This document shows, one piece after another, positions 1,427 to 23,209 of a stretch of DNA of 64,000 nt. Where the stretch lies: positions 1,922,001 to 1,986,000 of the forward strand of contig OZ218965.1 in the NCBI GenBank assembly GCA_965112735.1, read 5' to 3'. A program made the translations under genes and the position numbers. The notes under the pieces were generated by a model. That model did no database searches. It saw nothing but the letters and a program-made list of their open reading frames with translations, and was not told the DNA's origin. Positions within the stretch are counted from its first letter, which is position 1. The number at the start of each line of letters is the position of its first letter. This DNA comes from Phaeosaccion multiseriatum. Lineage: Eukaryota; Protista; Ochrophyta, other classes.

Positions 1427-4400
1427 ATGAAGATGAAGATGCACCTGCTGCCTGTGTGCGCGGTGCTTTGCGCCCTGCTTCCGGCACGTCTCGTCCAGGG
1501 ACAAACATGTAAGAGAGCGAGGAGGATGCAAAAGGCAGGGTGGGAGTGGGCAGCCACTGGTTGGGGAGGAGCAGGCAGCCAGCGCCGCAGCAGCAGCGAT
1601 GGCCCGTGGCCCGCTACCCTCCTGGCTGCTGTTCTGAATGACCGGCCTCCCAGCCATGGCTGGCTCATGATGCCTGAGACCTGACGCTGGCCTTCCTTCT
1701 TGTATTTGCTTGCCGCCACGCTTTGTTCCTTGGCCCTTGCTGCCTTGCCGTGGTTCTTCTGTTGTTCTTCCGACAACACCAGCTTCAACACCGGTGCGTA
1801 GCTAAGGCCTGGGAATGGTTGTGCGTGTACTCGAGTACACATACTAGTCCGGCTGCTCCAGTCATGCGGCTTTCTTTTTGCAACGACGACGTATTCTCTT
1901 CTCTCTTTAGTGTATACCCTTCTGAAAAAAACAGTCTGATCTTTCTCAGGCACAGTGTCCCTCTTTGCTCCCTTCAACACCTTGATCTTACCTCCTCCTC
2001 TCTCACCCGTCCCTCCCGTCAGGCGCTTTCGTCGTGTCAAGCCGATGCAGACGCCTTCCTGAGCATGACTGACCAGGAGCTTTTCGACATGCAAGACTCC
2101 GACAACAGGATTGGCGAATACTGCTACAACCGACAAATCTCTAGCAGCTCTGCTGCCTGCAACTACTATGTCCTAGCGGTACCGAGCGCCACTCATTCCG
2201 GCTGGCCCCGCACCACCCCAGGCGACGCAGGGACGGGCTGTGTGTATGAGGGTGACGGGGGCCCGACCAGGTGCTTCTTCCAGGACTCCAGCTACAATCT
2301 CACCGGGGCGGAACGCAGCTCTATGTGCACGCAGGACGTCGTGGCCAATGCGGCGGCTCAACTGCGCCATGCCATCACGAATGGAGCTTGCTGTGACGCG
2401 ACGGAGGTATGTATGTATGCATGCATGTACGTGTGTGTGTGTGCACGGGCAGGGATGGCAATCTATGGATGTACATACGCAGACGCGGATGGTGGGCAGC
2501 TCATCTGCGGCACACCCGCCCACCCCCTTTACCCACCCACCCACCCACTCACCCAGTCGCCGCGTCTGTTGGAGATGTTCCATCTGGACTCTCCCGCCTC
2601 TAATGCCCTCTCGCCCATCCTCCCCTCCTCTCTCTTATTCGTACGCTCACTGTCGGCCACAGGAACCCACGCCAGTCCCCACTCCGCCCCCTACACCTGT
2701 CCCGACAACACCGCCTCCAACACCGGTACGTCCCGAAGTGCTTAACCTTGTCGCTCTCAGCGTCTCCATGTTTGCTCACTTCAACACCTGCACCTGCGTG
2801 TGCCCCACATCCTCCTCCGCCCGTCCTCCCCTTCAGGCGCCTTCGTGTCAAGCAGATGCGGACGCCTTCCTGAGCATGACTGACCAGGAGCTGTTCGACA
2901 TGCAAGACTCCGACAACAAGATTGGCGAATACTGCTACAACCGACAAATCTCTAGCAGCTCTGCTGCCTGCAACTACTATGTCCTGGCGGTACCAAGCGA
3001 CACTCATTCCGGCTGGCCCCGCACCACCCCAGGCGACGCGGGGACCGGCTGTGTGTATGAGGGTGACGGGGGCCCGACCAGGTGCTTCTTCCAGGACTCC
3101 AGCTACGATCTCACCGGGGCGGAGCGCAGCTCCATGTGCACGCAGGACGTCGTGGCCAATGCGGCGGCTCAACTGCGTCATGCCATCACGAATGGAGCTT
3201 GCTGTGACGCGACGGAGGTATGTATGTATGCAGGCATGTACGTGTGTGTGTGTGCACGGGCAGGGATGGCAATCTATGGATGTACATACGCAGACGGATG
3301 GTGGGCAGCTCATCTGCGGCACACCCGCCCACCCCCTTTACCCACCCACCCACCCACTCACCCAGTCGCCGCGTCTGTTGGAGATGTTCCATCTGGACTC
3401 TCCCGCCTCTAATGTCCTCTCGCCCATCCTCCCCTCCTCCTTCTGCTTCGTATGCTCACTGTCGGCCACAGGAACCCACGCCAGTCCCCACTCCGCCCCC
3501 TACACCTGTCCCGACAACACCCGCTCCCACACCGGTACGTCCCGAAGTGCTTAACCTTGTCGCTCTCAGCGTCTCCCTGTTTGCTCACTTCAACACCTGC
3601 ACCTGCGTGTGCCCCACATCCTCCTCCGCCCGTCCTCCCCTTCAGGAGCCTTCGTGTCAAGCAGATGCGGACGCCTTCCTGAGCATGACTGACCAGGAGC
3701 TGTTCGACATGCAAGACTCCGACAACAAGATTGGCGAATACTGCTACAACCGACAAATCTCTAGCAGCTCTGCTGCCTGCAACTACTATGTCCTGGCGGT
3801 ACCGAGCGATACTCATTCCGGCTGGCCCCGCACCACCCCAGCCGACGCAGGGACGGGCTGTGTGTATGAGGGTGACGGGGGCCCGACCAGGTGCTTCTTC
3901 CAGGACTCCAGCTACGATCTCACCGGGGCGGAACGCAGCTCCATGTGCACACAGGACGTCGTGGCCAATGCGGCGGCTCAACTGCGTCATGCCATCACGA
4001 ATGGAGCTTGCTGTGACGCGACGGAGGTATGTATGTATGCATGTATGTGTGTGTGTACGAGCAGGGATGGCAATCTATGGGTGTACATGTAGACGTAAGG
4101 TGTGCAGCTCATAGCGGCACCACCCCACCACCCCCACCCACCCACCCAGTCGCCGCGTCTGTTGGGGATGTTCCATTTAAACCCTTGTGTACCCATCACT
4201 ACTAATACCCTCTCGCCCATCCTCGCCTCCTCCTTCTGCTTCGTACGCTCACTGTCGGCCACAGGAACCCACGCCAGTCCCCACTCCGCCCCCTACACCT
4301 GTCCCGACAACACCGCCTCCAACACCGGTACGTCCCGAAGTGCTTAACCTTGTCGCTCTCAGCGTCTCCCTGTTTGCTCACTTCAACACCTGCACCTGCG

Positions 4401-5651
4401 TGTGCCCCACATCCTCCTCCGCCCGTCCTCCCCTTCAGGAGCCTTCGTGTCAAGCAGATGCGGACGCCTTCCTGAGCATGACTGACCAGGAGCTGTTCGA
4501 CATGCAAGACTCCGACAACAAGATTGGCGAATACTGCTACAACCGACAAATCTCTAGCAGCTCTGCTGTCTGCAACTACTATGTCCTGGCGGTACCGAGC
4601 GACACTCATTCCGGCTGGCCCCGCACCACCCCAGGCGACGCAGGGACGGGCTGTGTGTATGAGGGTGACGGGGGCCCGACCAGGTGCTTCTTCCAGGACT
4701 CCAGCTACGATCTCACCGGGGCTGAACGCAGCTCCATGTGCACGCAGGACGTCGTGGCCAATGCGGCGGCTCAACTGCGTCATGCCATCACGAATGGAGC
4801 TTGCTGTGACGCGACGGAGGTAAGTATGTATGCAGGCATGTACGTGTGTGTGTGTGCACGGGCAGGGATGGCAATCTATGGATGTACATACGCAGACGGA
4901 TGGTGGGCAGCTCATCTGCGGCACACCCGCCCACCCCCTTTACCCACCCACCCACCCACCCACCCACCCAGTCGCCGCGTCTGTTGGAGATGTTCCATCT
5001 GGACTCTCCCGCCTCTAATGTCCTCTCGCCCATCCTCCCCTCCTCCTTCTGCTTCGTATGCTCACTGTCGGCCACAGGAACCCACGCCAGTCCCCACTCC
5101 GCCCCCTACACCTGTCCCGACAACACCGCCTCCAACACCGGTACGTCCCGAAGTGCTTAACCTTGTCGCTCTCAGAGTGTCCCTGTTTGCTCACTTCAAC
5201 ACCTGCACCTGCGTGTGCCCCACATCCTCCTCCGCCCGTCCTCCCCTTCAGGAGCCTTCGTGTCAAGCAGATGCGGACGCCTTCCTGAGCATGACTGACC
5301 AGGAGCTGTTCGACATGCAAGACTCCGACAACAGGATTGGCGAATACTGCTACAACCGACAAATCTCTAGCAGCTCTGCTGCCTGCAACTACTATGTCCT
5401 GGCGGTACCGAGCGACACTCATTCCGGCTGGCCCCGCACCACCCCAGGCGACGCAGGGACGGGCTGTGTGTATGAGGGTGACGGGGGCCCGACCAGGTGC
5501 TTCTTCCAGGACTCCAGCTACGATCTCACCGGGGCGGAGCGCAGCTCCATGTGCACGCAGGACGTCGTGGCCAATGCGGCGGCTCAACTGCGTCATGCCA
5601 TCACGAATGGAGCTTGCTGTGACGCGACGGAGGTATGTATGTATGCATGTA

Positions 5652-5684
<33 letters not shown>

Positions 5685-6785
5685 ATGTATGTTTGTGACC
5701 ATGGGCAGGGATGGCAATCTATGGATGTACAAGCATAGACGGATGGTGGACAGCTCATTAGCGGCACCACTCCACCCTCTCAACCCACCCATCCATCCAC
5801 CTACCCAGTCTCCACGTCTGTTGGCGATGTTCCATCTGGACTCTTGTGTACCCGCCTCTAATGCACTCTCGCCCATCCTCCCCTTCTCTTTCTGCCCCCT
5901 GCTTCCTACCCTCACTGCCGGTCACAGGAACCCACGGCAGTCCCCACCCAGACCCCTGTACCCACGCTGGTCCCCACTCCGCCCCCTATCAAGGAGATCA
6001 ACTGCGCCTCGCTGGGATGGCCGGGCAGCTGCGGCGCCTTCACCGACGCTGCGTCCTGCAACTGCTGGACCTCTTCCTCCTTCGCGTGCTCGTGGTCCGG
6101 CAACAGCTGCGGCACTGGTGGTGGTGGCGGCGGCCCTACTCCTACTCCTCCTCCACTGGCCACCAGGCCCCCGACGATGGCGCCCACGCCAGGGACCCCG
6201 CCTCCTGTCGGAGAGGTGAACTGTGCCGCGCTGGGATGGCCGGGCAGCTGCGGCGCCTTCACCGACGCTGCCTCGTGCAGCTGCTGGACCTCTTCCTCCT
6301 TCGCGTGCTCGTGGTCGGGCAACAGCTGCGGCACTGGTGGTGGTGGCGGTGGCCCTACTCCTACTCCTCCTCCACTGGCCACCAGGCCCCCGACGATGGC
6401 GCCCACGCCAGGGACCCCGCCTCCTGTCGGAGAGGTGAACTGTGCCGCGCTGGGATGGCCGGGCAGCTGCGGCGCCTTCACCGACGCTGCCTCGTGCAGC
6501 TGCTGGACCAAGTCCTCCTTCGCGTGCTCGTGGTCCGGCAGCAGCTGCGGCACTGGTGGTGGTGGCGGCGGCCCTACTCCTACCCCCCCTCCATTGGCCA
6601 CCAGGCCCCCGACGTACGCGCCCACGCCAGGGACCCCCCCTCCTGTGACTTCCCCCGAGGTGGACTGCACGCGGCTGGGCTGGGGCGGATCGTGCGGCGG
6701 TTTCACCTCCGAAGGCGAGTGCGAGTGCTGGGCATCTTCGTCCTTCGCATGCGGCTGGAGCAGCGCCGATCAGCAGTGCCACTGA
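1427..6785 (+). CDS. Secreted modular Cys-rich protein A1 (~1036 aa): signal peptide, 5 x 8-Cys domain with Pro/Thr linkers, 4 x 6-Cys/Trp modules
   Basis: Exons 1427-1508 (MKMKMHLLPVCAVLCALLPARLVQGQT), 1783-1793, 2023-2406, 2663-2725, 2837-3217, 3472-3534, 3646-4026, 4265-4327, 4439-4819, 5078-5140, 5252-5632, 5928-6785. All introns are GT..AG and the frame is continuous to TGA. The micro-exon is inferred. Confidence 0.85.
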
Positions 6786-7302
6786 AGAGAGTGATCGCCG
6801 AGCAGCGAGGGCCAGCTGTTGCCATCAAGGGTAGTTCTTACTCGGCGGACGGCTTGTGCTCGTCTCTTACTTGTACGACTTGGAGGGGGCTGCAGCCAGG
6901 AGGGAAGGAAGGGTGTGATTGGACCGGACTGATGGCTGCACACGTTTGGGGGGTTGAGTTGTGGGGCGATTCCTGCCCAAGCTGGCGGGGCGCCGACGAG
7001 AGGGAGAGTGTGTGGAGTGGGCGCGTGTGTGCGTGCGTGCCGTGTACAATAGTTGGAAAAGCAAGATGATTTCGTATCTGTCCACGTGGTAAGATTAATG
7101 CATTTGAAGTACACATCTTCCGGTCTTGCGTCTTCCTCCTAACCCATCTAGTTTGGAGCTAGTGAACGGCCCACGCCTTGGTTCTCAAGCCACGTCTCAT
7201 ATGTATGCTCACTTCGTATACGCCTGCTGCTATTCTTGCAACAACAGTGGGAAGAGACCTTCACAAACGGAGGGGTGGAGGGCACCTTATCTCCTCCGTC
7301 AT

Positions 7303-7660
7303 TCTGCCTGCTGCTCCTCTTCCTCGCTGTGGCCTCCTCTCGCCGACTCTACGCTGCCGCCTTCGCTTCGTCCGTCAGCCCCGCCTCTTTCTACCCCCTC
7401 CTCTTTCTTGGTCTCTTGCTGCCCCTTCTCGGCGTTCTGCAGCCTCTGTGGCTTGAACCTCCTCCGCGCTGCTCAGGAGGGGAACTTCCATTCCTGCTGC
7501 GCTTTGTGCCGGCTGCTCCGCAGCTCCGGCAGAGCTGCTTCCCTGAGCTACCATCCCTGCGCTGCGCAGAGAGCAGCGCGATGGCGCTGACGAAGAGCCT
7601 GCATCATCCCCCGGGAGAGCTTCAGCTCTGAGAAACTCCATAGCCACGCAGATCGCTAGT
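7303..7660 (-). repeat. Dispersed degenerate repeat (other copies ~11941-12340, ~19066-19425, ~56405-56780)
   Basis: Shared blocks such as ctctgcctgctgttcctcttcctcgctg, tcgtccgtcagccc, ttggtctcttgctgcccc, cctgagctgccatccctgcg and gctctgagaa occur in all four places. Boundaries are approximate. Confidence 0.8.
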
Positions 7661-8714
7661 ACCCCCTTTGCCCCTGCATTGCGTTGCCATGGGCACAACA
7701 AAGAGAGCAGGACCGGCAGGAGTTGATCACGACTTGACATGAGCCCGATAGCGATGCCGAAGTTGCCGGCCCCCGAGGAGGTCTCTGCTCAGCTCACACG
7801 CCGCTCTGAAGGCTGAACAGTCCTGCTTGCACCAGCAGTCTCCTTCACGCACTGCGAGCTTCAGGGGAGGGTGCCAACAGCCGAGGCAGCGACTCAGAAA
7901 GAGCACCTGCTGAAACATTGCGTTGGCAGGTTGTGGATCTGATGCTGCTCGCCGTGCTCTTCGTGCTCTCCCTGCCCTCCGTGCCCTCCGTGCCCTCCAT
8001 CCTCTCGCTCCTCCTGTGGCGTGGAGGGGACAGACGGAGCTACAGGCGACTCGCTCCGCGCCCCCCGGCCCCGATCCTGAGCTCCCCCGCCCCCCTCCTC
8101 CTTTGCACCTTAGCCGCCCTCGCTCTCTTCCTCTCTCCCGTCCTCTCGTTCGGCATCCTGTTCCCCCTCACACTCTATGTGTCCTCTATCCTGGCCTCAA
8201 CATGTACATCAGGCCACAGTCCGACTTATTACTCACGCCATCGCGCGCCTCGCTCCAAAGGAGTCCAGGAGAGCGCCTGAAGCAAAGTGTGACATCTGAA
8301 CCAGGGCAAGGATTGGAGGGTTAGTTCATGCCCCCTATTCTATCTTCAGACCTCTATCCGGACACTTACCTTTTAGTATTTAGGGATCCGGCAGGTTAAT
8401 TTTAATTTGAAGGGAACCGCCTTCGGAAAGCCAGCCGTCCTGTTGCAAGTTGGTCATTCGAGTCACAGTTGGGCATACGGCGCCATTTTCTTTTTCTTTG
8501 ATCACCATTTACAACAGCAATTGTTAGACGTTACAGATCTGTTACAAGTAGTTGGTATGTTAGTCACGCAAGCATGGCTCAAGGCTGCCAATAAGGGTGG
8601 TCGGTACGATAGAAAGCTTGAAGGTGTGACTTACCGCGCTTGCACGCGATTAAACTGGCACCATGTACAGTGGCACAACCCAGACACGACACAAAAAAGC
8701 AGAACCACGACAAC

Positions 8715-9618
8715 ATGAAGATGAAGATGAAGATGCTGCCGGTGTGCGCGGTCCTGTGCACCCTGCTTCCAGCACGTCTCGTCCAGGGACAAACACGTAA
8801 GAGAGCAAGGGATAACATGGACTGGTTGTTGCAAGCACTCAAGAAGACGGGTAGTGGGAGTGGGGAGGAGCAGCGCCGCAGCAGCAGCGATGGTCCATGG
8901 CCCGCTACCTTCCTGATGTCATGAATGACTGGGCTCCCATGCCTGACCTGACGCTGCCCTTGCTTTATTTCTTGCCGCCACGCTATGCTGCCGTGGTTCC
9001 TGCTGCCCTCGCTCTGCCTGCACCTGTTCCGACAACACCAGCTCCAACACCGGTACGTATGGGAATGGTCGTGGTACACAGAGACTTCTTCATGCGGCTT
9101 TCTTCATGTAGTTGTGTGCTCTCAGTGTGTGCAGTCTTATCTCCCTCAGAGGGTCCCTCTTTGCTCACTTCAACACCTTTACCTTACCTCCTCCTCTCTC
9201 GCCCGTCCTACCGTCAGGCGCCTTCGTCGTGTCAAGCAGACGCAAACGCCTTCCTGAGCATGACTGACCAGCAACTGTTCGACATGCAAGACTCCGACAA
9301 CCGGATTGGCGACTACTGCTACAACCGACAAATCTCTAGCAGCTCTGCTGTCTGCAACTACTATGTCCTGGCGGTACCGAGCGCCACTCATTCCGGCTGG
9401 CCCCGCACCACCCCAGGCGACGCAGGGACGGGCTGTGTGTATGAGGGTGAGGGGGGCCCGACCAGGTGCTTCTTCCAGGACTTCAGTTACGATCTCACCG
9501 GGGCGGAACGCAGCTCCATGTGCACGCAGGACGTCGTGGCCAATGCAGCCGCTCAACTGCGTCATGCCATCACGAATGGAGCTTGCTGTGACGCGACTCA
9601 GGTATGCATGTATGCATG

Positions 9619-9652
<34 letters not shown>

Positions 9653-11419
9653 TGTATGTATGATGATGTATGTACATATATGTATGTATGTGTGTGCACG
9701 GGCAGGGATGGCAATCTATGGGTGTGCATACGTAGACGGATGGTGGGCAGCTCATCAGCGGCACAAACGCCACCCTCTCCACCCACCCACCCAGTCTCCG
9801 CGTCTGTTGGGGATGTTCCATCTGGACTCTTGTGTACCCGCCTCTAATACACTCTCGCTCCCTCCTCTTTCTGCTTCTTACCCTCACTGCCGGCCACAGG
9901 AACCCACGCCAGACCCCACTCCTGCCCCTACAATGGTGTCCACCACGCTAGACCCCACTCCGGCCCCTACACCTGTCCCGACAACACCCGCTCCAACACC
10001 GGTACGTCCCGAAGTGCCTAACCTTGTTGCTCTCTCTCAGAGAGTCCCTCTTTGCTCACTTCAACACCTGCACCTGTGCCCCACCCCTTCTTCCGCCCGT
10101 TTTCCCCTTCAGGCGCCTTCGTGTCAAGCAGATGCAGACGCCTTCCTGAGCATGACTGACCAGGAGCTGTTCGACATGCAAGACTCCGACAACAGGATTG
10201 GCGAATACTGCTACAACCGACAAATCTCTAGCAGCTCTGCTGCCTGCAACTACTATGTCCTGGCGGTACCGAGCGCCACTCATTCCGGCTGGCCCCGCAC
10301 CACCCCAGCCGACGCAGGGACGGGCTGTGTGTATGAGGGTGACGGGGGCCCGACCAGGTGCTTCTTCCAGGACTTCAGTTACGATCTCACCGGGGCGGAA
10401 CGCAGCTCCATGTGCACGCAGGACGTCGTGGCCAATGCGGCCGCTCAACTGCGTCATGCCATCACGAATGGAGCTTGCTGTGAGGCGACTCAGGTATGTA
10501 TGTATGCATGTATGTATGTATGTATGTATGTATGTATGATGTATGTATGTATGTATGTATGTATGTGTGTTTGTGACCATGGGCAGGGATGGCAATCTTT
10601 GGATGTGCATACGTAGACGGATGGTGGGCAGCTCATCATGGCACCAGGCCACCCTTTCCACCCACCCAGTCTCCGCGTCTGTTGGGGATGTTCTGTTCCA
10701 TCTGGGCTCTTGTGTACCCGCCTCTAATACACTCTCGCCCATCCTCCCCTCCTCTTTCTGCTTCCTACCCTCACTGCCGGCCACAGGAACCCACGGTAGT
10801 CCCCACCCAGACCCCTGTACCCACGCTGGTCCCCACTCCGCCCCCTACCAAGGAGATCAACTGCCCCTCGCTGGGATGGCCGGGCAGATGCAGCGCATTC
10901 ACCGACCGTGCTTCGTGCAACTGCTGGACCTCTTCTTCCTTCGCCTGCTCGTGGTCCGGGAACAGCTGCGGCACTGGTGGCGGTGGCCCTACTCCTACTC
11001 CTCCTCCACTGGCCACCAGGCCCCCGACGATGGCGCCCACGCCAGGGACCCCGCCTCCTGCAGGCGAGGTGAACTGTGCCGCGCTGGGATGGCCGGGCAG
11101 CTGCGGCGCCTTCACCGACGCTGCCTCGTGCAACTGCTGGACCAAGTCCGCCTTCGCGTGCTCGTGGTCCGGCAGCAGCTGCGGCACTGGTGGTGGTGGC
11201 GGCGGCCCTACTCCTACTCCTCCTCCACTGGCCACCAGGCCCCCGACGTACGCGCCCACGCCAGGGACCCCCCCTCCTGTGACTTCCCCCGAGGTGGACT
11301 GCACGCGGCTGGGCTGGGGCGGATCGTGCGGCGGTTACACCTCCGAAGGCGAGTGCGAGTGCTGGGCCACTTCGTCCTTCGCATGCGGCTGGAGCAGCGC
11401 CGATCAGCAGTGCCACTGA
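8715..11419 (+). CDS. Secreted modular Cys-rich protein A2 (~530 aa): signal peptide, 2 x 8-Cys domain, 3 x 6-Cys/Trp modules
   Basis: Exons 8715-8796, 9042-9052, 9218-9601, 9900-10001, 10113-10493, 10787-11419. Same splice architecture as A1, with an open frame. Confidence 0.85.
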
Positions 11420-12419
11420 AGAGAGTGATCGCCGAGCAGCGAGGGCCAGTTGTTGCCATCAAGGGTAGTTCTTACTCGGCGGACGGCTTGTGCTCGTCTC
11501 TTACTTGCACGACTTGGAGGGGGCTGCAGCCAGGAGGGAAGGAAGGGTGTGATTGGACCGGACTGATGGCTGCACACGTTTGGGGGGTTGAGTTATGGGG
11601 CGATTCCTGCCCAAGCTGGCGGGGCGCCGATGAGAGGGAGAGTGTGTGGAGTGGGCGCGTGTGTGCGTGTGTGCGTGCGTGCCGTGCACAATAGCTGGAC
11701 AAGCAAGATGATTTCGTATCTGTCCACGTGGTAAGATTAATGCAGTTCAGGTACACATCTTCCGGTCTTGCCTCTCCCTCCGAACCCGTCTAGTTTGGAG
11801 CTAGTGAGCGGCCCAGCGCCTTAGTTCTCAAGCCACATCTCATATATTCTGCTCGTACACACCTGCTGCTATTCTTGCGACAACAGTGGGAAGAGACCTT
11901 CACAAACGGAGGGTTGGAGGGCACCTTATCTCCTCCGTCACTCTGCCTGCTGTTCCTCCTCCTCGCTGTGGCCCCCTCTCGCCGACTCTACGCTGCCGCC
12001 TTCTCTTCGTCCGTCAGCCCCGCCTCTTTCTACCCCCTCCTCTTCTTGGTCTCTTGCTGACCCTTGTCGGTGTTCCACAGCCTCTGTGGCTTGCACTCGC
12101 TCCTCCGCGCTGCTCAGGAGGGGAACTTCCATCCCTGTGGCAGCGCTTGGTCCCGGCTGCTCTGCGGCTCCTGCAGAGCTGCTCCCCTGAGCTGCCATCC
12201 CTGCGCTCGATGAAGGCCCCTGCTCATCCGTGTCTTCTGCTCCTGCTCTGCGCAGAGAGCAGCGCGATGGCGCTAACGAAGAGCCTGCATCATCCCCCGG
12301 GAGAGCTTCAGCTCTGAGAAACTCCATAGCCACGCAGATCCCTAGTACCCTCTTCGCCCCTGCATTGCGTTGCCATGGGCACACCAAGCAACGAGAGCAG
12401 GACCGGCATGAGGGAAGGT

Positions 12420-13566
12420 CGGCCACAGACCGGCCTATAAGCCTATGCTCTAGGCCGGACTTATCTTCAGCCAAATCTGGGCTTGACCAGGGGGGGCGAG
12501 CTCTGTATCCCCTACCGAACCCCTCACTCGACCAATTGTCGTATCTTGGCCTGTGAGAAGCCACTGCAAGCTCAGGGAAAGAAGAGGGAGCGAGGGAGGG
12601 AGGGAGGGAGTGAGCGGGTGCGTGCGTGGGTGGATGCGTGGGTGGGAGCGTGCGTGCGTGTGTGCGTGCGTGATTGAGTGAGTGACGAATGAATGAATGA
12701 GTGCGCGTGCGTGCGTGAGTGAGTGAACGAGTGGGTTAGGGTGTGAGTGAGTGAGTGAGTGAGCGTGTGCGTGCGTTTGTGGGTGGATGCCACACTGTCA
12801 CACTGGTGGAGTGTTTGCATGATAAGTGGGTGCCTGAGAAGTGGGGAGTGAGGACGAGGAGGAGTGTCAAAGCTACACCCTCCTGCGCTGTCACTGGCTG
12901 CCCGGCTGGACCACGCCTTTCACACTTTGTCTCAAGATGCTGTCCTTGCCCTACCTTATGAGGGCCTGCTGTCCAAGTGATGTTATGATGCTGAGAAACG
13001 AAGTTTTCAAAGGGTTGTTAGAGAGAGAGAGGCCCTAGCCAAAGGAAGGGCCCAGCAGAGGAAACTTGGGGTCCCCTAGCTAGGCCAGGACCCAACAGAG
13101 GTAGGTTAGGGGTTTTGAGCTCCCCCTAGGCCTAGCTAGGCCAGGGACCTGCGTCTCTAAGCCTAGACCAATAGACCGGTCTGGAACCGAGGAGGGGGAT
13201 CGGAGGGCTACCATGATCGTGTAAGTTGGGCGTATGTTTGGTTTCACAGCTGGCACTTCTCTTCTCTTGATTCGTTCGATGTTTGCACGGCTAAGTATGT
13301 TCTTTGCAGGGCCTAGGCCAGGAGCCTGCGGCTCCTCTAGGCCGGCCGAATTTAGACCTAGGCCAATATTGGGAATGATTCTTCTCTGTCAGTCTCATCA
13401 AGCACTGTCAGTTGACTACTAATACTAAGTCAATAAATAATTCCGGGGGTAAGCAAATTTCTCTCTTGGTTCGTTGACTCCTTAGTACCTCTTCTCTTCC
13501 TCTCCATCCCACTGCTAAATACGGCCTAGGCCATGGGCCTGCGCCACATAGGCCGGTCTGTGGCCG
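12420..13566. mobile_element. Possible non-autonomous element bounded by a 19-bp perfect inverted repeat
   Basis: cggccacagaccggcctat (12420-12438) is the reverse complement of ataggccggtctgtggccg (13548-13566). The interior is rich in CTAG/CCTAGG palindromes. No clear target-site duplication or transposase. Confidence 0.3.
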
Positions 13567-13925
13567 TGGAGGGGTACCGATCGTGTAAGTTGGGTTAGTT
13601 TCACAGCTGGTACTACTTGCTTCTCGCGATTCAAGCAAGAATATACTGAAATGGTTCTTTGCACGGATAGCTACGTTCTTTGCAACGGCATCACCATGTT
13701 ATATGCACCCCAATTCAGTTAAATGTATGCGAACTACCTACTCGGCCCATTCTGTATTCTGGCGGGTTGTTATGCTGGGCACGCAATGATGGAGGGGGCG
13801 GGGTGCTTGCTCGAAGCTCAAGGAACACAAATTAGGCTTGAATGCAGTGGTGGCACAAACACAAACACAAGAACAAGAAGGAAATATTTGCAAAAAGCAC
13901 GACAGGATATCTACGACAAGCCAAC

Positions 13926-16900
13926 ATGAAGATGAAGATGCACCTGCTGCCTGTGTGCGCGGTGCTTTGCGCCCTGCTTCCGGCACGTCTCGTCCAGGGA
14001 CAAACATGTAAGAGAGCGAGGAGGATGCAAAAGGCAGGGTGGGAGTGGGCAGCCACTGGTTGGGGAGGAGCAGGCAGCCAGCGCCGCAGCAGCAGCGATG
14101 GCCCGTGGCCCGCTACCCTCCTGCTGTTCTGAATGACCGGCCTCCCAGCCATGGCTCATGCCTGAGACCTGACGCTGGCCTTCTTTCTTGTATTTGCTTG
14201 CCGCCACGCTTTGTTCCTTGGACTTGGCCCTTGCTGCCTTGCCGTGGTTCTTCTGTTGTTCTTCCGACAACACCAGCTTCAACACCGGTGCGTAGCTAAG
14301 GCCTGGGAATGGTTGTGCGTGTACTCGAGTACACATACTAGTCCGGCTGCTCCAGTCATGCGGCTTTCTTTTTGCAACGACGACGTGTTCTCTTCTGTCT
14401 TTAGTGTATACCCTTCTGAAAAAAACAGTCTGATCTTTCTCAGGCAGAGTGTCCCTCTTCGCTCCCTTCAACACCTTGATCTTACCTCCTCCTCTCTCAC
14501 CCGTCCCTCGCCTCCTGTCAGGCGCTTTCGTCGTGTCAAGCAGATGCAAACGCGTTCCTGAGCATGACTGACCAGCAACTGTTCGACATGCAAGACTCCG
14601 ACAACAGGATTGGCGAATACTGCTACAACCGACAAATCTCTAGCAGCTCTGCTGCCTGCAACTACTATGTCCTGGCGGTACCGAGCGACACTCATTCCGG
14701 CTGGCCCCGCACCACCCCAGGCGACGCAGGGACGGGCTGTGTGTATGAGGGTGACGGGGGCCCGACCAGGTGCTTCTTCCAAGACTCCAGCTACGATCTC
14801 ACCGGGGCGGAACGCAGCTCCATGTGCACGCAGGACGTCGTGGCCAATGCGGCGGCTCAACTGCGTCATGCCATCACGAATGGAGCTTGCTGTGACGCGA
14901 CGGAGGTATGTATGTATGCATGCATGCATGTATGTGTGTGTGTGTGTGCACGGGCAGGGATGGCAATCTATGGATGTACATACGCAGACGCGGATGGTGG
15001 GCAGCTCATCTGCGGCACACCCGCCCACCCCCTTTACCCACCCACCCACCCACTCACCCAGTCGCCGCGTCTGTTGGAGATGTTCCATCTGGACTCTCCC
15101 GCCTCTAATGCCCTCTCGCCCATCCTCCCCTCCTCTCTCTTATTCGTACGCTCACTGTCGGCCACAGGAACCCACGCCAGTCCCCACTCCGCCCCCTACA
15201 CCTGTCCCGACAACACCGCCTCCAACACCGGTACGTCCCGAAGTGCTTAACCTTGTCGCTCTCAGCGTCTCCCTGTTTGCTCACTTCAACACCTGCACCT
15301 GCGTGTGCCCCACATCCTCCTCCGCCCGTCCTCCCCTTCAGGAGCCTTCGTGTCAAGCAGATGCGGACGCCTTCCTGAGCATGACTGACCAGGAGCTGTT
15401 CGACATGCAAGACTCCGACAACAAGATTGGCGAATACTGCTACAACCGACAAATCTCTAGCAGCTCTGCTGCCTGCAACTACTATGTCCTGGCGGTACCG
15501 AGCGACACTCATTCCGGCTGGCCCCGCACCACCCCAGGCGACGCAGGGACGGGCTGTGTGTATGAGGGTGACGGGGGCCCGACCAGGTGCTTCTTCCAGG
15601 ACTCCAGCTACGATCTCACCGGGGCGGAGCGCAGCTCCATGTGCACGCAGGACGTCGTGGCCAATGCGGCGGCTCAACTGCGTCATGCCATCACGAATGG
15701 AGCTTGCTGTGACGCGACGGAGGTATGTATGTATGCATGTATGTATGTATGTATGTATGTATGTATGTATGTATGTATGTATGTATGTATGTATGTATGT
15801 TTGTGACCATGGGCAGGGATGGCAATCTATGGATGTACATACGCAGACGCGGATGGTGGGCAGCTCATCTGCGGCACACCCGCCCACCCCCTTTACCCAC
15901 CCACCCACCCACCCACCCACCCAGTCGCCGCGTCTGTTGGAGATGTTCCATCTGGACTCTCCCGCCTCTAATGTCCTCTCGCCCATCCTCCCCTCCTCCT
16001 TCTGCTTCGTATGCTCACTGGCGGCCACAGGAACCCACGCCAGTCCCCACTCCGCCCCCTACACCTGTCCCGACAACACCCGCTCCCACACCGGTACGTC
16101 CCGAAGTGCTTAACCTTGTCGCTCTCAGCGTCTCCCTCTTTGCTCACTTCAACACCTGCCCCTGCGTGTGCCCCACATCCTCCTCCGCCCGTCCTCCCCT
16201 TCAGGAGCCTTCGTGTCAAGCAGATGCGGACGCCTTCCTGAGCATGACTGACCAGGAGCTGTTCGACATGCAAGACTCCGACAACAGGATTGGCGAATAC
16301 TGCTACAACCGACAAATCTCTAGCAGCTCTGCTGCCTGCAACTACTATGTCCTGGCGGTACCGAGCGACACTCATTCCGGCTGGCCCCGCACCACCCCAG
16401 GCGACGCAGGGACGGGCTGTGTGTATGAGGGTGACGGGGGCCCGACCAGGTGCTTCTTCCAGGACTCCAGCTACGATCTCACCGGGGCGGAGCGCAGCTC
16501 CATGTGCACGCAGGACGTCGTGGCCAATGCGGCGGCTCAACTGCGTCATGCCATCACGAATGGAGCTTGCTGTGACGCGACGGAGGTATGTATGTATGCA
16601 TGCATGCATGTATGTGTGTGTGTGTGTGCACGGGCAGGGATGGCAATCTATGGATGTACATACGCAGACGCGGATGGTGGGCAGCTCATCTGCGGCACAC
16701 CCGCCCACCCCCTTTACCCACCCACCCACCCACCCACCCACCCAGTCGCCGCGTCTGTTGGAGATGTTCCATCTGGACTCTCCCGCCTCTAATGTCCTCT
16801 CGCCCATCCTCCCCTCCTCCTTCTGCTTCGTACGCTCACTGTCGGCCACAGGAACCCACGCCAGTCCCCACTCCGCCCCCTACACCTGTCCCGACAACAC

Positions 16901-18563
16901 CCGCTCCAACACCGGTACGTCCCGAAGTGCTTAACCTTGTCGCTCTCAGCGTCTCCCTCTTTGCTCACTTCAACACCTGCACCTGCGTGTGCCCCACATC
17001 CTCCTCCGCCCGTCCTCCCCTTCAGGAGCCTTCGTGTCAAGCAGATGCAGACGCCTTCCTGAGCATGACTGACCAGGAGCTGTTCGACATGCAAGACTCC
17101 GACAACAGGATTGGCGAATACTGCTACAACCGACAAATCTCTAGCAGCTCTGCTGCCTGCAACTACTATGTCCTGGCGGTACCGAGCGCCACTCATTCCG
17201 GCTGGCCCCGCACCACCCCAGGCGACGCAGGGACGGGCTGTGTGTATGAGGGTGACGGGGGCCCGACCAGGTGCTTCTTCCAAGACTCCAGCTACGATCT
17301 CACCGGGGCGGAGCGCAGCTCCATGTGCACGCAGGACGTCGTGGCCAATGCGGCGGCTCAACTGCGTCATGCCATCACGAATGGAGCTTGCTGTGACGCG
17401 ACGGAGGTGTGTATGTATGCATGTATGTGTGTGTGTATGTATGTATGTATGTTTGTGACCATGGGCAGGGATGGCAATCTATGGATGTACAAGCGTAGAC
17501 GGATGGTGGACAGCTCATTAGCGGCACCACTCTACCCACCCATCCACCCACCTACTCAGTCTCCACGTCTGTTGGCGATGTTCCATCTGGACTCTTGTGT
17601 ACCTGCCTCTACTGCACTCTCGCCCATCCTCCCCTTCTCTTTCTGCCCCCTGCTTCCTACCCTCACTGCCGGCCACAGGAACCCACGGCAGTCCCCACCC
17701 AGACCCCTGTACCCACGCTGGTCCCCACTCCGACCCCTGTACCCACGCTGGTCCCCACTCCGCCCCCTATCAAGGAGATCAACTGCGCCTCGCTGGGATG
17801 GCCGGGCAGCTGCGGCGCCTTCACCGACGCTGCGTCCTGCAACTGCTGGACCTCTTCCTCCTTCGCGTGCTCGTGGTCCGGCAACAGCTGCGGCACGGGT
17901 GGTGGCGGCGGCCCTACTCCTACTCCTCCTCCACTGGACACCAGGCCCCCGACGATGGCGCCCACGCCAGGGACTCCGCCTCCTGCAGGCGAGGTGAACT
18001 GTGCCGCGCAGGGATGGCCGGGCAGCTGCGGCGCCTTCACCGACGCTGCCTCGTGCAACTGCTGGACCTCTTCCTCCTTCGCGTGCTCGTGGTCGGGCAA
18101 CAGCTGCGGCACTGGTTGTGGTGGTGGCGGCCCTACTCCTACTCCTCCTCCACTGGCCACCAGGCCCCCGACGATGGCGCCCACGCCAGGGACCCCGCCT
18201 CCTGTCGGAGAGGTGAACTGTGCCGCGCTGGGATGGCCGGGCAGCTGCGGCGCCTTCACCGACGCTGCCTCGTGCAGCTGCTGGACCAAGTCCGCCTTCG
18301 CGTGCTCGTGGTCCGGCAACAGCTGCGGTACTGGTGGTGGTGGCGGCGGCCCTACTCCTACTCCTCCTCCACTGGCCACCAGGCCCCCGACGTACGCGCC
18401 CACGCCAGGGACCCCCCCTCCTGTGACTTCCCCCGAGGTGGACTGCACGCGGCTGGGCTGGGGCGGATCGTGCGGCGGTTTCACCTCCGAAGGCGAGTGC
18501 GAGTGCTGGGCCTCTTCGTCCTTCGCATGCGGCTGGAGCAGCGCCGATCAGCAGTGCCACTGA
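13926..18563 (+). CDS. Secreted modular Cys-rich protein B1 (~897 aa): signal peptide, 4 x 8-Cys domain, 4 x 6-Cys/Trp modules
   Basis: Exons 13926-14007, 14277-14287, 14522-14905, 15168-15230, 15342-15722, 16031-16093, 16205-16585, 16852-16914, 17026-17406, 17679-18563. Confidence 0.85.
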
Positions 18564-20460
18564 AGAGAGTGATCGCCGAGCAGCGAGGGCCAGCTGTTGC
18601 CATCAAGGGTAGTTCTTACTCGGCGGACGGCTTGTGCTCGTCTCTTACTTGCACGACTTGGAGGGGGCTGCAGCCAGGAGGGAAGGAAGGGTGTGATTGG
18701 ACCGGACTGATGGATGCACACGTTTGGGGGGTTGAGTTGTGGGGCGATTCCTGCCCAAGCTGGCGGGGCGCCGACGAGAGGGAGAGTGTGTGGAGTGGGC
18801 GCGTGTGTGCGTGCGTGCCGTGTACAATAGTTGGAAAAGCAAGATGATTTCGTATCTGTCCACGTGGTAAGATTAATGCATCTTCCGGTCTTGCGTCTTC
18901 CTCCTAACCCATCTAGTTTGGAGCTAGTGAACGGCCCACGCCTTGGTTCTCAAGCCACGTCTCATATGTATGCTCACTTCGTATACGCCTGCTGCTATTC
19001 TTGCAACAACAGTGGGAAGAGACCTTCACAAACGGAGGGGTGGAGGGCACCTTATCTCCTCCGTCACTCTGCCTGCTGCTCCTCTTCCTCGCTGTGGCCT
19101 CCTCTCGCCGACTCTACGCTGCCGCCTTCGCTTCGTCCGTCAGCCCCGCCTCTTTCTACCCCCTCCTCTTTCTTGGTCCCTTGCTGCCCCTTCTCGGTGT
19201 TCTGCAGCCTCTGTGGCTTGAACCTCCTCCGCGCTGCTCAGGAGGGGAACTTCCATTCCTGCTGCGCTTTGTGCCGGCTGCTCCGCAGCTCCGGCAGAGC
19301 TGCTTCCCTGAGCTACCATCCCTGCGCTGCGCAGAGAGCAGCGCGATGGCGCTGACGAAGAGCCTGCATCATCCCCCGGGAGAGCTTCAGCTCTGAGAAA
19401 CTCCATAGCCACGCAGATCGCTAGTACCCCCTTTGCCCCTGCAATGACCATGGGCACAACAAAGAGAGCAGGACCGGCAGGAATTGATCACGACTTGACA
19501 TGAGCCCGATAGCGATGCCGAAGTTGCCGGCCCCCGAGGAGGTCTCTGCTCAGCTCACAAGCCGCTCTGAAGGCTGAACAGTCCTGCTTGCACCAGCAGT
19601 CTCCTTCACGCACTGCGAGCTTCAGGGGAGGGTGCCAACAGCCGAGGCAGCGACTCAGAAAGAGCACCTGCTGAAACATTGCGTTGGCAGGTTGTGGATC
19701 TGATGCTGCTCGCCGTGCTCTTCGTGCTCTCCCTGCCCTCCGTGCCCTCCCTCCTCTCGCTCCTCCTGTGGCGTGGAGGGGACAGACGGAGCTACAGGCG
19801 ACTCGCCCCGCGCCCCCCGGCCCCGATCCTGAGCTCCCCCGCCCCCCTCCTCCTTTGCACCTTAGCCGCCCTCGCTCTCTTCCTCTCTCCCGTCCTCTCG
19901 TTCGGCATCCTGTTCCCCCTCACACTCTATGTGTCCTCTATCCTGGCCTCAACTTATCACAGTCCGACTTACTCACGCCATCGCGCGCCTCGCTCCAAAG
20001 GAGTCCAGGAGAGCGCCTGCAGCAAAGTGTGACATCTGAACCAGGGCAAGGATTGGAGGGTTAGTTCATGCCCCCTATTCTATCTTCAGACCTCTATCCG
20101 GACACTTACCTTTTAGTATTTAGGGATCCGGCAGGTTAATTTTAATTTGAAGGGAACCGCCTTCGGAAAGCCAGCCGTCTTGTTGCAAGTTGGTCATTCG
20201 AGTCACAGTTGGGCATACGGCACCATTTCTCTTCTTATTTTCTTTGATCACCATTTACAACAGCAATTGTTAGACGTTACAGATCTGTTACAAGTAGTTG
20301 GTATGTTAGTCACGCAAGCATGGCTCAAGGCTGCCAATAAGGGTGGTCGGTACGATAGAAAGCTTGAAGGTGTGACTTACCGCGCTTGCACGCGATTAAA
20401 CTGGCACCATGTACAGTGGCACAACCCAGACACAACACAAAAAAGCAGAACCACGACAAC

Positions 20461-23209
20461 ATGAAGATGAAGATGGAGATGCTGCCGGTGTGCGCGGTCC
20501 TGTGCGCCCTGCTTCCAGCACGTCTCGTCCAGGGACAAACACGTAAGAGAGCAAGGGATAGCATGGACTGGTTGTTGCAAGCACTCAAGAAGACGGGTAG
20601 TGGGAGTGGGGAGGAGCAGCGCCGCAGCAGCAGCGATGGTCCATGGCCCGCTACCTTCCTGATGTCATGAATGACTGGGCTCCCATGCCTGACCTGACGC
20701 TGCCCTTGCTTTATTTCTTGCCGCCACGCTATGCTGCCGTGGTTCCTGCTGCCCTCTGCCTGCGCCTGTTCCGACAACACCAGCTCCAACACCGGTACGT
20801 ATGGGAATGGTCGTGGTACACAGAGACTTCTTCATGCGGCTTTCTTCATGTAGTTGTGTGCTCTCAGTGTGTGCAGTCTTATCTCCCTCAGAGGGTCCCT
20901 CTTTGCTCACTTCAACACCTTTACCTTACCTCCTCCTCTCTCGCCCGTCCTACCGTCAGGCGCTTTCGTCGTGTCAAGCAGACGCAAACGCCTTCCTGAG
21001 CATGACTGACCAGCAACTGTTCGACATGCAAGACTCCGACAACCGGATTGGCGACTACTGCTACAACCGACAAATCTCTAGCAGCTCTGCTGTCTGTAAC
21101 TACTATGTCCTGGCGGTACCGAGCGCCACTCATTCCGGCTGGCCCCGCACCACCCCAGCCGACGCAGGGACGGGCTGTGTGTATGAGGGTGAGGGGGGCC
21201 CGACCAGGTGCTTCTTCCAGGACTTCAGTTACGATCTCACCGGGGCGGAACGCAGCTCTATGTGCACGCAGGACGTCGTGGCCAATGCAGCCGCTCAACT
21301 GCGTCATGCCATCACGAATGGAGCTTGCTGTGACGCGACTCAGGTATGCATGTATGTATGCATGTATGTATGTATGTATGTATGTATGTGTGTATGTATG
21401 TATGTATGTATGTATGTCTGTATGTATGTATGTGTGTATGTATGTATGTATGTATGTGTGTGCATATGTATGTATGTGTGTGCACGGGCAGGGATGGCAA
21501 TCTATGGGTGTGCATACGTAGACGGATGGTGGGCAGCTCATCAGCGGCACAAACCCCACCCTCTCCACGCACCCACCCACCCAGTCTCCGCGTCTGTTGG
21601 GGATGTTCCATCTGGACTCTTGTGTACCCTCCTCTAATACACTCTCGCTCCCTCCTCTTTCTGCTTCTTACCCTCACTGCCGGCCACAGGAACCCACGCC
21701 AGACCCCACTCCTGCCCCTACAATGGTGTCCACCACGCTAGACCCCACTCCTGCCCCTACACCTGTCCCGACAACACCCGCTCCAACACCGGTACGTCCC
21801 GAAGTGCCTAACCTTCTTGTCTCTCTCAGAGAGTCCCTCTTTGCTCACTTCAACACCTGCACCTGTGCCCCACATCCTCCCCCGTCCGTCCTCCCCTTCA
21901 GGCGCCTTCGTGTCAAGCAGATGCGGACGCCTTCCTGAGCATGACTGATCAGGAGCTGTTCGACATGCAAGACTCCGACAACAGGATTGGCGAATACTGC
22001 TACAACCGACAAATCTCTAGCAGCTCTGCTGCCTGCAACTACTATGTCCTGGCGGTACCGAGCGATACTCATTCCGGCTGGCCCCGCACCACCCCAGCCG
22101 ATGCAGGGACGGGCTGTGTGTATGAGGGTGACGGGGGCCCGACCAGGTGCTTCTTCCAGGACTTCAGCTACGATCTCACCGGGGCGGAACGCAGCTCCAT
22201 GTGCACGCAGGACGTCGTGGCCAATGCAGCGGCTCAACTGCGTCATGCCATCACGAATGGAGCTTGCTGTGAGGCGACTCAGGTATGTATGTATGTATGT
22301 GTGTGTGTATGTATGTATGTATGTTTGTGACCATGGGCAGGGATGGCAATCTATGGATGTGCATACGTAGACGGATGGTGGGCACCTCATCATGGCACCA
22401 GGCCACCCTCTCCACCCACCCAGTCTCCGCGTCTGTTGGGGATGTTCTGTTCCATCTGGGCTCTTGTGTACCCGCCTCTAATACACTCTCGCCCATCCTC
22501 CCCTCCTCTTTCTGCTTCCTACCCTCACTGCCGGCCACAGGAACCCACGGTAGTCCCCACCCAGACCCCTGTACCCACGCTGGTCCCCACTCCGACCCCT
22601 GTACCCACGCTGGTCCCCACTCCGCCCCCTACCAAGGAGATCAACTGCCCCTCGCTGGGATGGCCGGGCAGGTGCAGCCCATTCACCGACCGTGCTTCGT
22701 GCAACTGCTGGACCTCTTCTTCCTTCGCGTGCTCGTGGTCCGGGAACAGCTGCGGCACTGGTGGTGGTGGCGGTGGCCCTACTCCTACTCCTCCTCCACT
22801 GGCCACCAGGCCCCCGACGTACGCGCCCACGCCAGGGACCCCGCCTCCTGCAGGCGAGGTGAACTGTGCCGCGCTGGGATGGCCGGGTAGCTGCGGCGCC
22901 TTCACCGACGCTGCCTCGTGCAACTGCTGGACCAAGTCCGCCTTCGCGTGCTCGTGGTCCGGCAACAGCTGCGGCACTGGTGGTGGTGGCGGCGGCCCTA
23001 CTCCTACTCCCCCTCCACTGGCCACCAGGCCCCCGACGTACGCGCCCACGCCAGGGACCCCCCCTCCTGTGACTTCCCCCGAGGTGGACTGCACGCGGCT
23101 GGGCTGGGGCGGATCGTGCGGCGGTTACACCTCCGAAGGCGAGTGCGAGTGCTGGGCCACTTCGTCCTTCGCATGCGGCTGGAGCAGCGCCGATCAGCAG
23201 TGCCACTGA
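20461..23209 (+). CDS. Secreted modular Cys-rich protein B2 (~542 aa): signal peptide, 2 x 8-Cys domain, 3 x 6-Cys/Trp modules
   Basis: Exons 20461-20542, 20784-20794, 20960-21343, 21690-21791, 21902-22282, 22541-23209. Confidence 0.85.

Follow-up and report, generated by a model that had tools for sequence, protein, structure and literature searches.

In animals, it is well known that symmetric exons and unequal crossover can resize mucin-like proteins. The SRCR and SID parts of human DMBT1 (salivary agglutinin, gp340) are located on separate symmetric exons. In this protein SID spacers stand between the SRCR domains, and copy-number variation alters how many domains there are (PMC4851238). 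In diatoms, adhesive proteins in which Cys-rich and Pro/Thr/Ser-rich parts alternate have been described as mucin-like (bioRxiv 10.1101/2023.03.06.531300). For non-model marine algae, the make-up of surfaces and matrices is poorly understood. Here we describe a tandem gene array in a 64,000-nucleotide stretch of the Phaeosaccion multiseriatum genome (C16:1922001-1986000, hereafter the window), a clean natural non-animal example of domain-per-exon cassettes gained and lost. The genes encode two to five copies of an 8-Cys domain of 127 amino acids, spaced by Pro/Thr linkers and followed by a tail of six-Cys modules of 41 amino acids. Their products are probably secreted, O-glycosylated modular surface or matrix proteins that combine a multivalent head with an attachment tail shared with other proteins and that have changed size through unequal recombination. 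As the general principle of this design is already known, the locus matters mainly for its two protein modules, both of which are undescribed.

Judged by design, DMBT1 would be the closest working analogue of the algal genes. The likeness covers a secreted glycoprotein (predicted in the alga), a Cys-rich domain of about 110 amino acids alternating with a short Pro/Ser/Thr spacer, and copy-number change by whole repeats. However, there is no sequence or fold relation between the two, the algal variation was seen between paralogues, and the algal tail is a different module. SRCR was also tried as an identity for the algal domain and was rejected, with no Pfam match for the domain and no fold match. 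The diatom proteins CaFAP1 and the trailins, compared here by description, are likewise secreted stramenopile proteins in which Pro/Thr/Ser-rich spacers separate Cys-rich modules, and have been interpreted as adhesive or matrix glycoproteins (10.1101/2023.03.06.531300). Their Cys repeats, in contrast, contain six cysteines and match no known domain, and CaTrailin4 is predicted to be intron-free, whereas the algal array uses one exon per domain (10.1101/2023.03.06.531300).

Repeat finding detected a 300-nt core that recurred 13 times in the window, 793-939 bp apart, together with another repeat family whose period was 219 nt. All 13 domain exons (381 or 384 nt) were located by script; each was bounded by cag upstream and gt[ag] downstream, open in phase 0, and encoded 127 or 128 amino acids with 8 Cys. 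The nine linker exons, 63 nt long in genes A and C and 102 nt long in genes B and D, encoded a purely Pro/Thr-rich spacer and had uniform splice borders (ccacag upstream, gtacgt downstream). All internal exons were thus symmetric (phase 0/0). The tail modules of each gene shared a single terminal exon, rather than having one exon apiece, and 4, 3, 4, and 3 modules (genes A, B, C, and D) followed the 219-nt period and were joined by Gly and Pro/Thr stretches. These results bear out the exon model of the first-pass annotation, which had proposed one-domain exons and separate Pro/Thr linker exons, both in phase 0/0, a cassette of about 800 bp in numbers of 5, 2, 4, and 2, and the same module counts at the C-terminus. 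Protein lengths were obtained by summing exon lengths, and all searches and folds were run exon by exon.

The four start exons (82 nt) encoded MKMK(M)..LLPVCAVLCALLPARLVQGQT, which by eye resembles a signal peptide, and ended in phase 1. The proteins ended in ...ADQQCH and had no hydrophobic, membrane or GPI-type (glycosylphosphatidylinositol) tail. With the mucin-like composition, these ends agree with the earlier proposal that the products are secreted. Between the start exon and the first domain exon, an 11-nt micro-exon placed before gt[ag]cgt offered the only stop-free, frame-keeping acceptor common to all four genes, and we include it as the putative second exon. Longer second exons were rejected, as each was interrupted in at least one of the four genes and non-triplet indels distinguished the region among them. 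The region upstream of the micro-exon differed among the paralogues by indels of 4, 7, and 6 nt and was therefore taken to be intronic. The sequence just upstream of the micro-exon resembled linker coding sequence, so the micro-exon looks like the remaining 3′ end of a former linker exon.

The first-pass annotation had counted four paralogous genes in tandem. All four were present in the window, but the array was larger. The genome had 21 matches to the domain: 13 in the window, five just upstream of it, and three on contig C8. The five upstream matches belonged to two further genes directly upstream of the window, one with three domains (74-79% identical) and one with two domains that was nearly identical to genes B and D. 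The array therefore consisted of three tandem units of 12.5 kb, each with a long and a short gene, with domain counts of 3/2, 5/2, and 4/2 and tail-module counts of 4/3 in every unit. The window was eukaryotic, with about 60% G+C and many microsatellites. The unit spacers were 92-97% identical overall and contained indels; the spacers between long and short genes were 97% identical and those joining units 94.5-95.3% identical.

In a highly repetitive region with exact matches of up to 442 bp between units, the units could be haplotypes or mis-joined reads, in which case the differences in cassette number would be unreal. We consider such an assembly artefact very improbable. There were three units rather than two and they reached upstream of the window, the spacers had diverged by 3-8% with indels, and the cassette counts of the long genes were 3, 5, and 4; unique sequence followed gene D, and the assembly comprised 67 Mb in 22 contigs. 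A haplotype mis-join in particular appears unlikely because three diverged units carry different counts.

Whole cassettes of genes A and C (intron, linker, intron, and domain) differed by 0.9-5.9%, and their similarity was not paired by position. Exons A5 and C3 were free of differences across the 375 nt that were compared, and A5 and C3 were also linked by a 442-bp exact match, the longest found between units. The non-positional identity and the A5/C3 match fit unequal crossover or gene conversion after duplication of the unit, and are consistent with the unequal crossover proposed earlier. The earlier claim of symmetric exons within near-identical cassettes, introns included, also held, with cassettes 94-99% identical. 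By symmetric exons, near-identical cassettes with their introns, and counts of 3/5/4 among the long paralogues, the genes probably belong to the copy-number-variable exon-cassette genes, a functional class and not a homology family. The reading frame would likewise survive the loss of any internal exon by skipping, which is a matter of arithmetic and not evidence that skipping occurs.

The idea of an accordion-type system, in which cassettes and tail modules vary in number from gene to gene, was retained in part. The long genes did differ (3, 5, and 4 domains), but the 4, 3, 4, 3 tails and the two-domain short genes were fixed differences between gene types, the same difference being repeated in all three units, and so do not represent an accordion still in action.

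The coding status of the cassettes was assessed by comparing exons with introns. Intron 1 of the cassette contained (GTAT)n runs, was 238-346 nt long, had a length that in most cases was not divisible by three, and was usually interrupted by in-frame stops. Among the seven A/C cassettes it had 6.7% substitutions per site versus 2.3% in the domain exon. The ratio of synonymous to non-synonymous codon differences among the domain exons was about 1.2:1; the ratio of non-synonymous to synonymous rates (dN/dS) is therefore well below 1, which indicates purifying selection. All cysteines were conserved among the domain exons, and identity within the array was 92-100%. From this pattern the domain exons are best read as constrained coding exons. 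As none of the gene products was present in the protein collections searched, the genes might be silent or decaying duplicates without current function. This is hardly credible, however, as all 13 domain, nine linker, and four terminal exons were open with intact splice sites, synonymous changes were in excess, and every cysteine was kept.

Intron 2, between linker and domain (2726-2836 and eight equivalents), was 111 nt (37 codons) in eight of the nine cassettes and 110 nt in gene D. It was free of in-frame stops in eight of the nine cassettes, so that retention would preserve the frame, and its divergence (1.5%) was below that of the flanking exons (2.3%). A coding role was rejected, given the 110-nt length in gene D and a translation that was unconserved between gene types; because of this lack of conservation, it was treated as an intron under some constraint.

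The 127-amino-acid domain is a real conserved algal family without a name or a Pfam model. A profile of six diverged paralogues retrieved 30 proteins of 129-222 amino acids in a word search (E down to 1e-29), among them P0005, an 'expressed unknown protein' of the diatom Seminavis robusta. A full search with a hidden Markov model gave 206 cluster representatives at E≤1e-3, 59 of them at E≤1e-30, among 1.84 billion proteins. In the alignment of the family (A2, 35 sequences) C4, C33, C45, C72, C83, C101, and C122 were either invariant or conserved to 90% or more, as were the shared motifs G(W)PRT, GTGCV, and NAAAQLRHAI (GxP, GxGC, and NAxxQLR). The relatives matched over the whole domain of about 120 amino acids with E values of 1e-10 to 1e-178 and retained the seven conserved Cys together with the motifs. 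The earlier statement that no described family could be recognised stands for Pfam and the PDB, but the domain is no orphan, having algal relatives in these 206 representatives. Literature searches found no name for either module.

Most relatives were single-domain proteins of about 200 amino acids; some were tandem with Pro-rich linkers, and none had the six-Cys tail. In the red alga Erythrolobus australicus (P0032/P0167) a reprolysin metalloprotease was followed by five domain copies on Pro-rich linkers. The green alga Neomeris dumetosa had a relative (P0028), and a four-domain relative came from a metagenome. Other relatives also bore TSP1, F5/8 type C (discoidin) or PG_binding_1 domains, so the partner domains are of predicted extracellular type. 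Several of the diatom-type single-domain relatives (P0005, P0006, P0010, P0014, and P0015) had a second Cys-rich region (CYHCRKCKxNxExCKEGYKFCKLC) and ended in GDEL. This ending resembles an endoplasmic-reticulum retention signal, and not all family members need be extracellular. In P0035, an MMETSP transcript of 605 amino acids, two domain copies flanked a central region with an HPDPH motif. Pfam gave no match in this central region; by eye, the motif recalls the diatom-specific GDPH domain of adhesive-trail proteins.

A paralogous locus on contig C8 (147893-161909) contained the domain exon three times, in diverged form (59-93% identity), beside a Pro/Thr-rich open frame of 1515 amino acids. 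This locus also contained small Cys-rich, Cys-knot-like exons (DxCxxLDSFCxxQNDCCxGLEC) and a Ser/His/Pro-rich repeat, and the six-Cys tail modules were absent. Its layout indicates that the domain exon moves by exon shuffling within this genome.

Attempts to place the domain in a known family were negative. No Pfam family was above threshold for the domain, and none reached E≤0.01 for any member of the A2 alignment. DUF5560 (PF17715) was rejected at 12.9 bits and E 0.07, against a gathering cut-off of 25 bits. The extender repeats of the bacterial Lap adhesin (PDB 6xi3) were rejected as well, since their E of 5.6e-6 summed four stretches of 33 amino acids with individual E values of 7-50 and was lost with the family profile. 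The AlphaFold model of domain A2, built with the family alignment, was a confident alpha/beta structure (predicted local distance difference test, pLDDT, 84; predicted template modelling score, pTM, 0.81). Searches with this model gave no match: the best Foldseek E against the PDB was 4.2, the best VIA-align Z against 48,161 chains was 3.6, and the best E against the BFVD viral models was 2.4. As modelled, the domain has no recognisable fold relative. The ESM Atlas gave no usable match for the window domain or the Seminavis relative, and a metagenome DNA scan with the domain alignment confirmed zero loci.

The domain might instead be a small secreted enzyme or inhibitor acting on wall polymers or proteases, with the arrays raising its dose. 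The last helix carried the invariant polar residues N108, Q112, and R114, which together with the GWPRT and GTGCV motifs would suit such a role, as would the position of the domain behind a reprolysin protease in the red alga. This explanation is nevertheless improbable, because no enzyme or inhibitor family or fold was matched, and repeats strung on Pro/Thr spacers are a usual arrangement for binding modules. A binding role for the domain is suggested by its context.

Among the diverged paralogues, amino-acid changes and small indels clustered at domain residues 34-44 and 52-58 (for example 2936-2968 and 2990-3010). The first of these variable patches was flanked by the second and third Cys and the other followed directly behind the third, and the C-terminal helix (NAAAQLRHAI) was invariant.

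Clustered changes of this kind around the second and third Cys would be expected of fast-evolving recognition proteins for mating, self/non-self discrimination, or defence against pathogens or grazers, as opposed to structural matrix proteins; diversifying selection would then act on both the number of copies and a variable loop. The nearest analogue, DMBT1, is itself a pattern-recognition protein (PMC4851238). Against this, the domains of the array were 92-100% identical and under purifying selection, and we regard a recognition role as unlikely.

The consensus of the tail module was EVNCAxLGWxGSCGAFTDAASCNCWTxSSFACSWSGxSCGT, in which six Cys, three Trp, and one Phe were invariant. The genome contained at least 99 matches to it, spread over 11 contigs and about 40 loci. 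Five of these loci were inspected (L018-L022, on contigs C2, C11, C5, C9, and C4); in each, three or four copies on Pro/Thr linkers formed the C-terminal end of an open frame, and the sequence upstream of the tail was unrelated to the 127-amino-acid domain. The last copy was a variant ending in ..QC[HSG] in three of these five loci, as in the window genes. Two of the inspected frames shared a Cys-rich region, ..GGLGCNxxGxxNCRxC.., for which Pfam gave no match.

The tail module resembles fungal CBM1 in being small, with three invariant Trp and one Phe, and in standing behind Pro/Thr linkers, the position that CBM1 takes in cellulases; its C-x-C-W...C-x-W spacing is reminiscent of the PSI motif. 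However, the Cys number and spacing of both differ from those of the tail module, and Pfam searches with 23 tail modules and with the whole terminal exons gave no match at E≤10, CBM_1 and PSI included. A profile search of the PDB returned only chance CDGSH matches (E 0.3), a word search with the module gave one candidate and zero matches, and a metagenome DNA scan with the module alignment confirmed zero loci. As the module is small, aromatic-rich, and disulfide-locked, follows linkers of the O-glycosylation type, and is common to many proteins of predicted secreted type, it may serve in attachment to the wall or matrix.

Taken together, the domains and modules suggest the following mechanism. 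After the signal peptide, two to five compact, disulfide-locked domains would be spaced by stiff Pro/Thr spacers, and this string may act as a multivalent binding head. The three or four six-Cys, Trp-rich modules would form a common attachment or cross-linking tail that holds the secreted proteins in the cell covering. Because domains and spacers are all encoded by phase-0 exons of their own, in cassettes that hardly differ from their neighbours, misaligned recombination between cassettes could add or remove whole domains in frame. Such recombination would have resized the long genes to 3, 5, and 4 domains.

Several points weigh against this account of resizable surface or matrix proteins. The short genes were invariant, with two domains and three modules; size change is therefore slow and confined to the long genes. 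The binding role of the domain and the anchoring role of the tail are inferred. The signal peptide was judged by eye, and splicing, secretion, and glycosylation were predicted from the sequence. The 5′ gene model requires an unusual 11-nt micro-exon, the AlphaFold model of the tail module was too poor for comparison with known folds (pLDDT 58, pTM 0.33), and the protein collections searched for domain relatives contained no protein of this species. We still consider the account of secreted, resizable modular proteins the probable one.

A wider proposal is possible and is offered tentatively: that the 127-amino-acid domain is an undescribed extracellular fold of red, green, and stramenopile algae, that the 41-amino-acid module is a lineage-specific, genome-wide 'address tag' fastening dozens of different secreted proteins to the cell covering, and that head valency is tuned by cassette recombination. 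If the address-tag part were true, the module would correspond in algae to the wall-binding repeats of bacteria or to CBM1 of fungi. The module recurs at about 40 loci and may be a handle for retaining secreted proteins; in that case it would be informative on the assembly of the cell covering and useful as a display tag. The 127-amino-acid extracellular domain deserves a family entry and a solved structure. Coordinates of all gene features are collected in Table 1.

Table 1. Genes and exons of the array, in positions of the window.
Feature	Position	Strand	Remarks
Gene A	1427-6785	+	signal exon, 11-nt micro-exon, 5 domain exons, 4 linker exons, terminal exon with 4 tail modules; ~1036 amino acids
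Gene B	8715-11419	+	signal exon, micro-exon, 2 domain exons, one 102-nt linker exon, terminal exon with 3 tail modules; ~530 amino acids
Gene C	13926-18563	+	signal exon, micro-exon, 4 domain exons, 3 linker exons, terminal exon with 4 tail modules; ~897 amino acids
Gene D	20461-23209	+	signal exon, micro-exon, 2 domain exons, one 102-nt linker exon, terminal exon with 3 tail modules; ~542 amino acids
Signal-peptide-like exon 1 (82 nt, donor gtaaga)	A 1427-1508; B 8715-8796; C 13926-14007; D 20461-20542	+	
Putative 11-nt micro-exon	A 1783-1793; B 9042-9052; C 14277-14287; D 20784-20794	+	sole frame-keeping acceptor common to the four genes
Domain exon A1 (384 nt)	2023-2406	+	
Domain exon A2 (381 nt)	2837-3217	+	query for most searches and the fold
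Domain exon A3 (381 nt)	3646-4026	+	
Domain exon A4 (381 nt)	4439-4819	+	
Domain exon A5 (381 nt)	5252-5632	+	
Domain exon B1 (384 nt)	9218-9601	+	
Domain exon B2 (381 nt)	10113-10493	+	
Domain exon C1 (384 nt)	14522-14905	+	
Domain exon C2 (381 nt)	15342-15722	+	
Domain exon C3 (381 nt)	16205-16585	+	
Domain exon C4 (381 nt)	17026-17406	+	
Domain exon D1 (384 nt)	20960-21343	+	
Domain exon D2 (381 nt)	21902-22282	+	
63-nt Pro/Thr linker exons (EPTPVPTPPPTPVPTTPPPTP), gene A	2663-2725, 3472-3534, 4265-4327, 5078-5140	+	
63-nt Pro/Thr linker exons, gene C	15168-15230, 16031-16093, 16852-16914	+	
102-nt Pro/Thr linker exons	B 9900-10001; D 21690-21791	+	
Terminal exon, gene A	5928-6785	+	Pro/Thr lead-in, 4 six-Cys Trp-rich modules on a 219-nt period, stop
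Terminal exon, gene B	10787-11419	+	3 tail modules
Terminal exon, gene C	17679-18563	+	4 tail modules
Terminal exon, gene D	22541-23209	+	3 tail modules

Adjoining the array, the minus strand of the window contained very long open frames at 25534-52269 (1009, 1742, 1046, 3569, and 711 amino acids). These frames showed RCC1 repeats, two SPRY domains, and a UBA-like domain, and correspond to a giant HERC-like ubiquitin-ligase gene.

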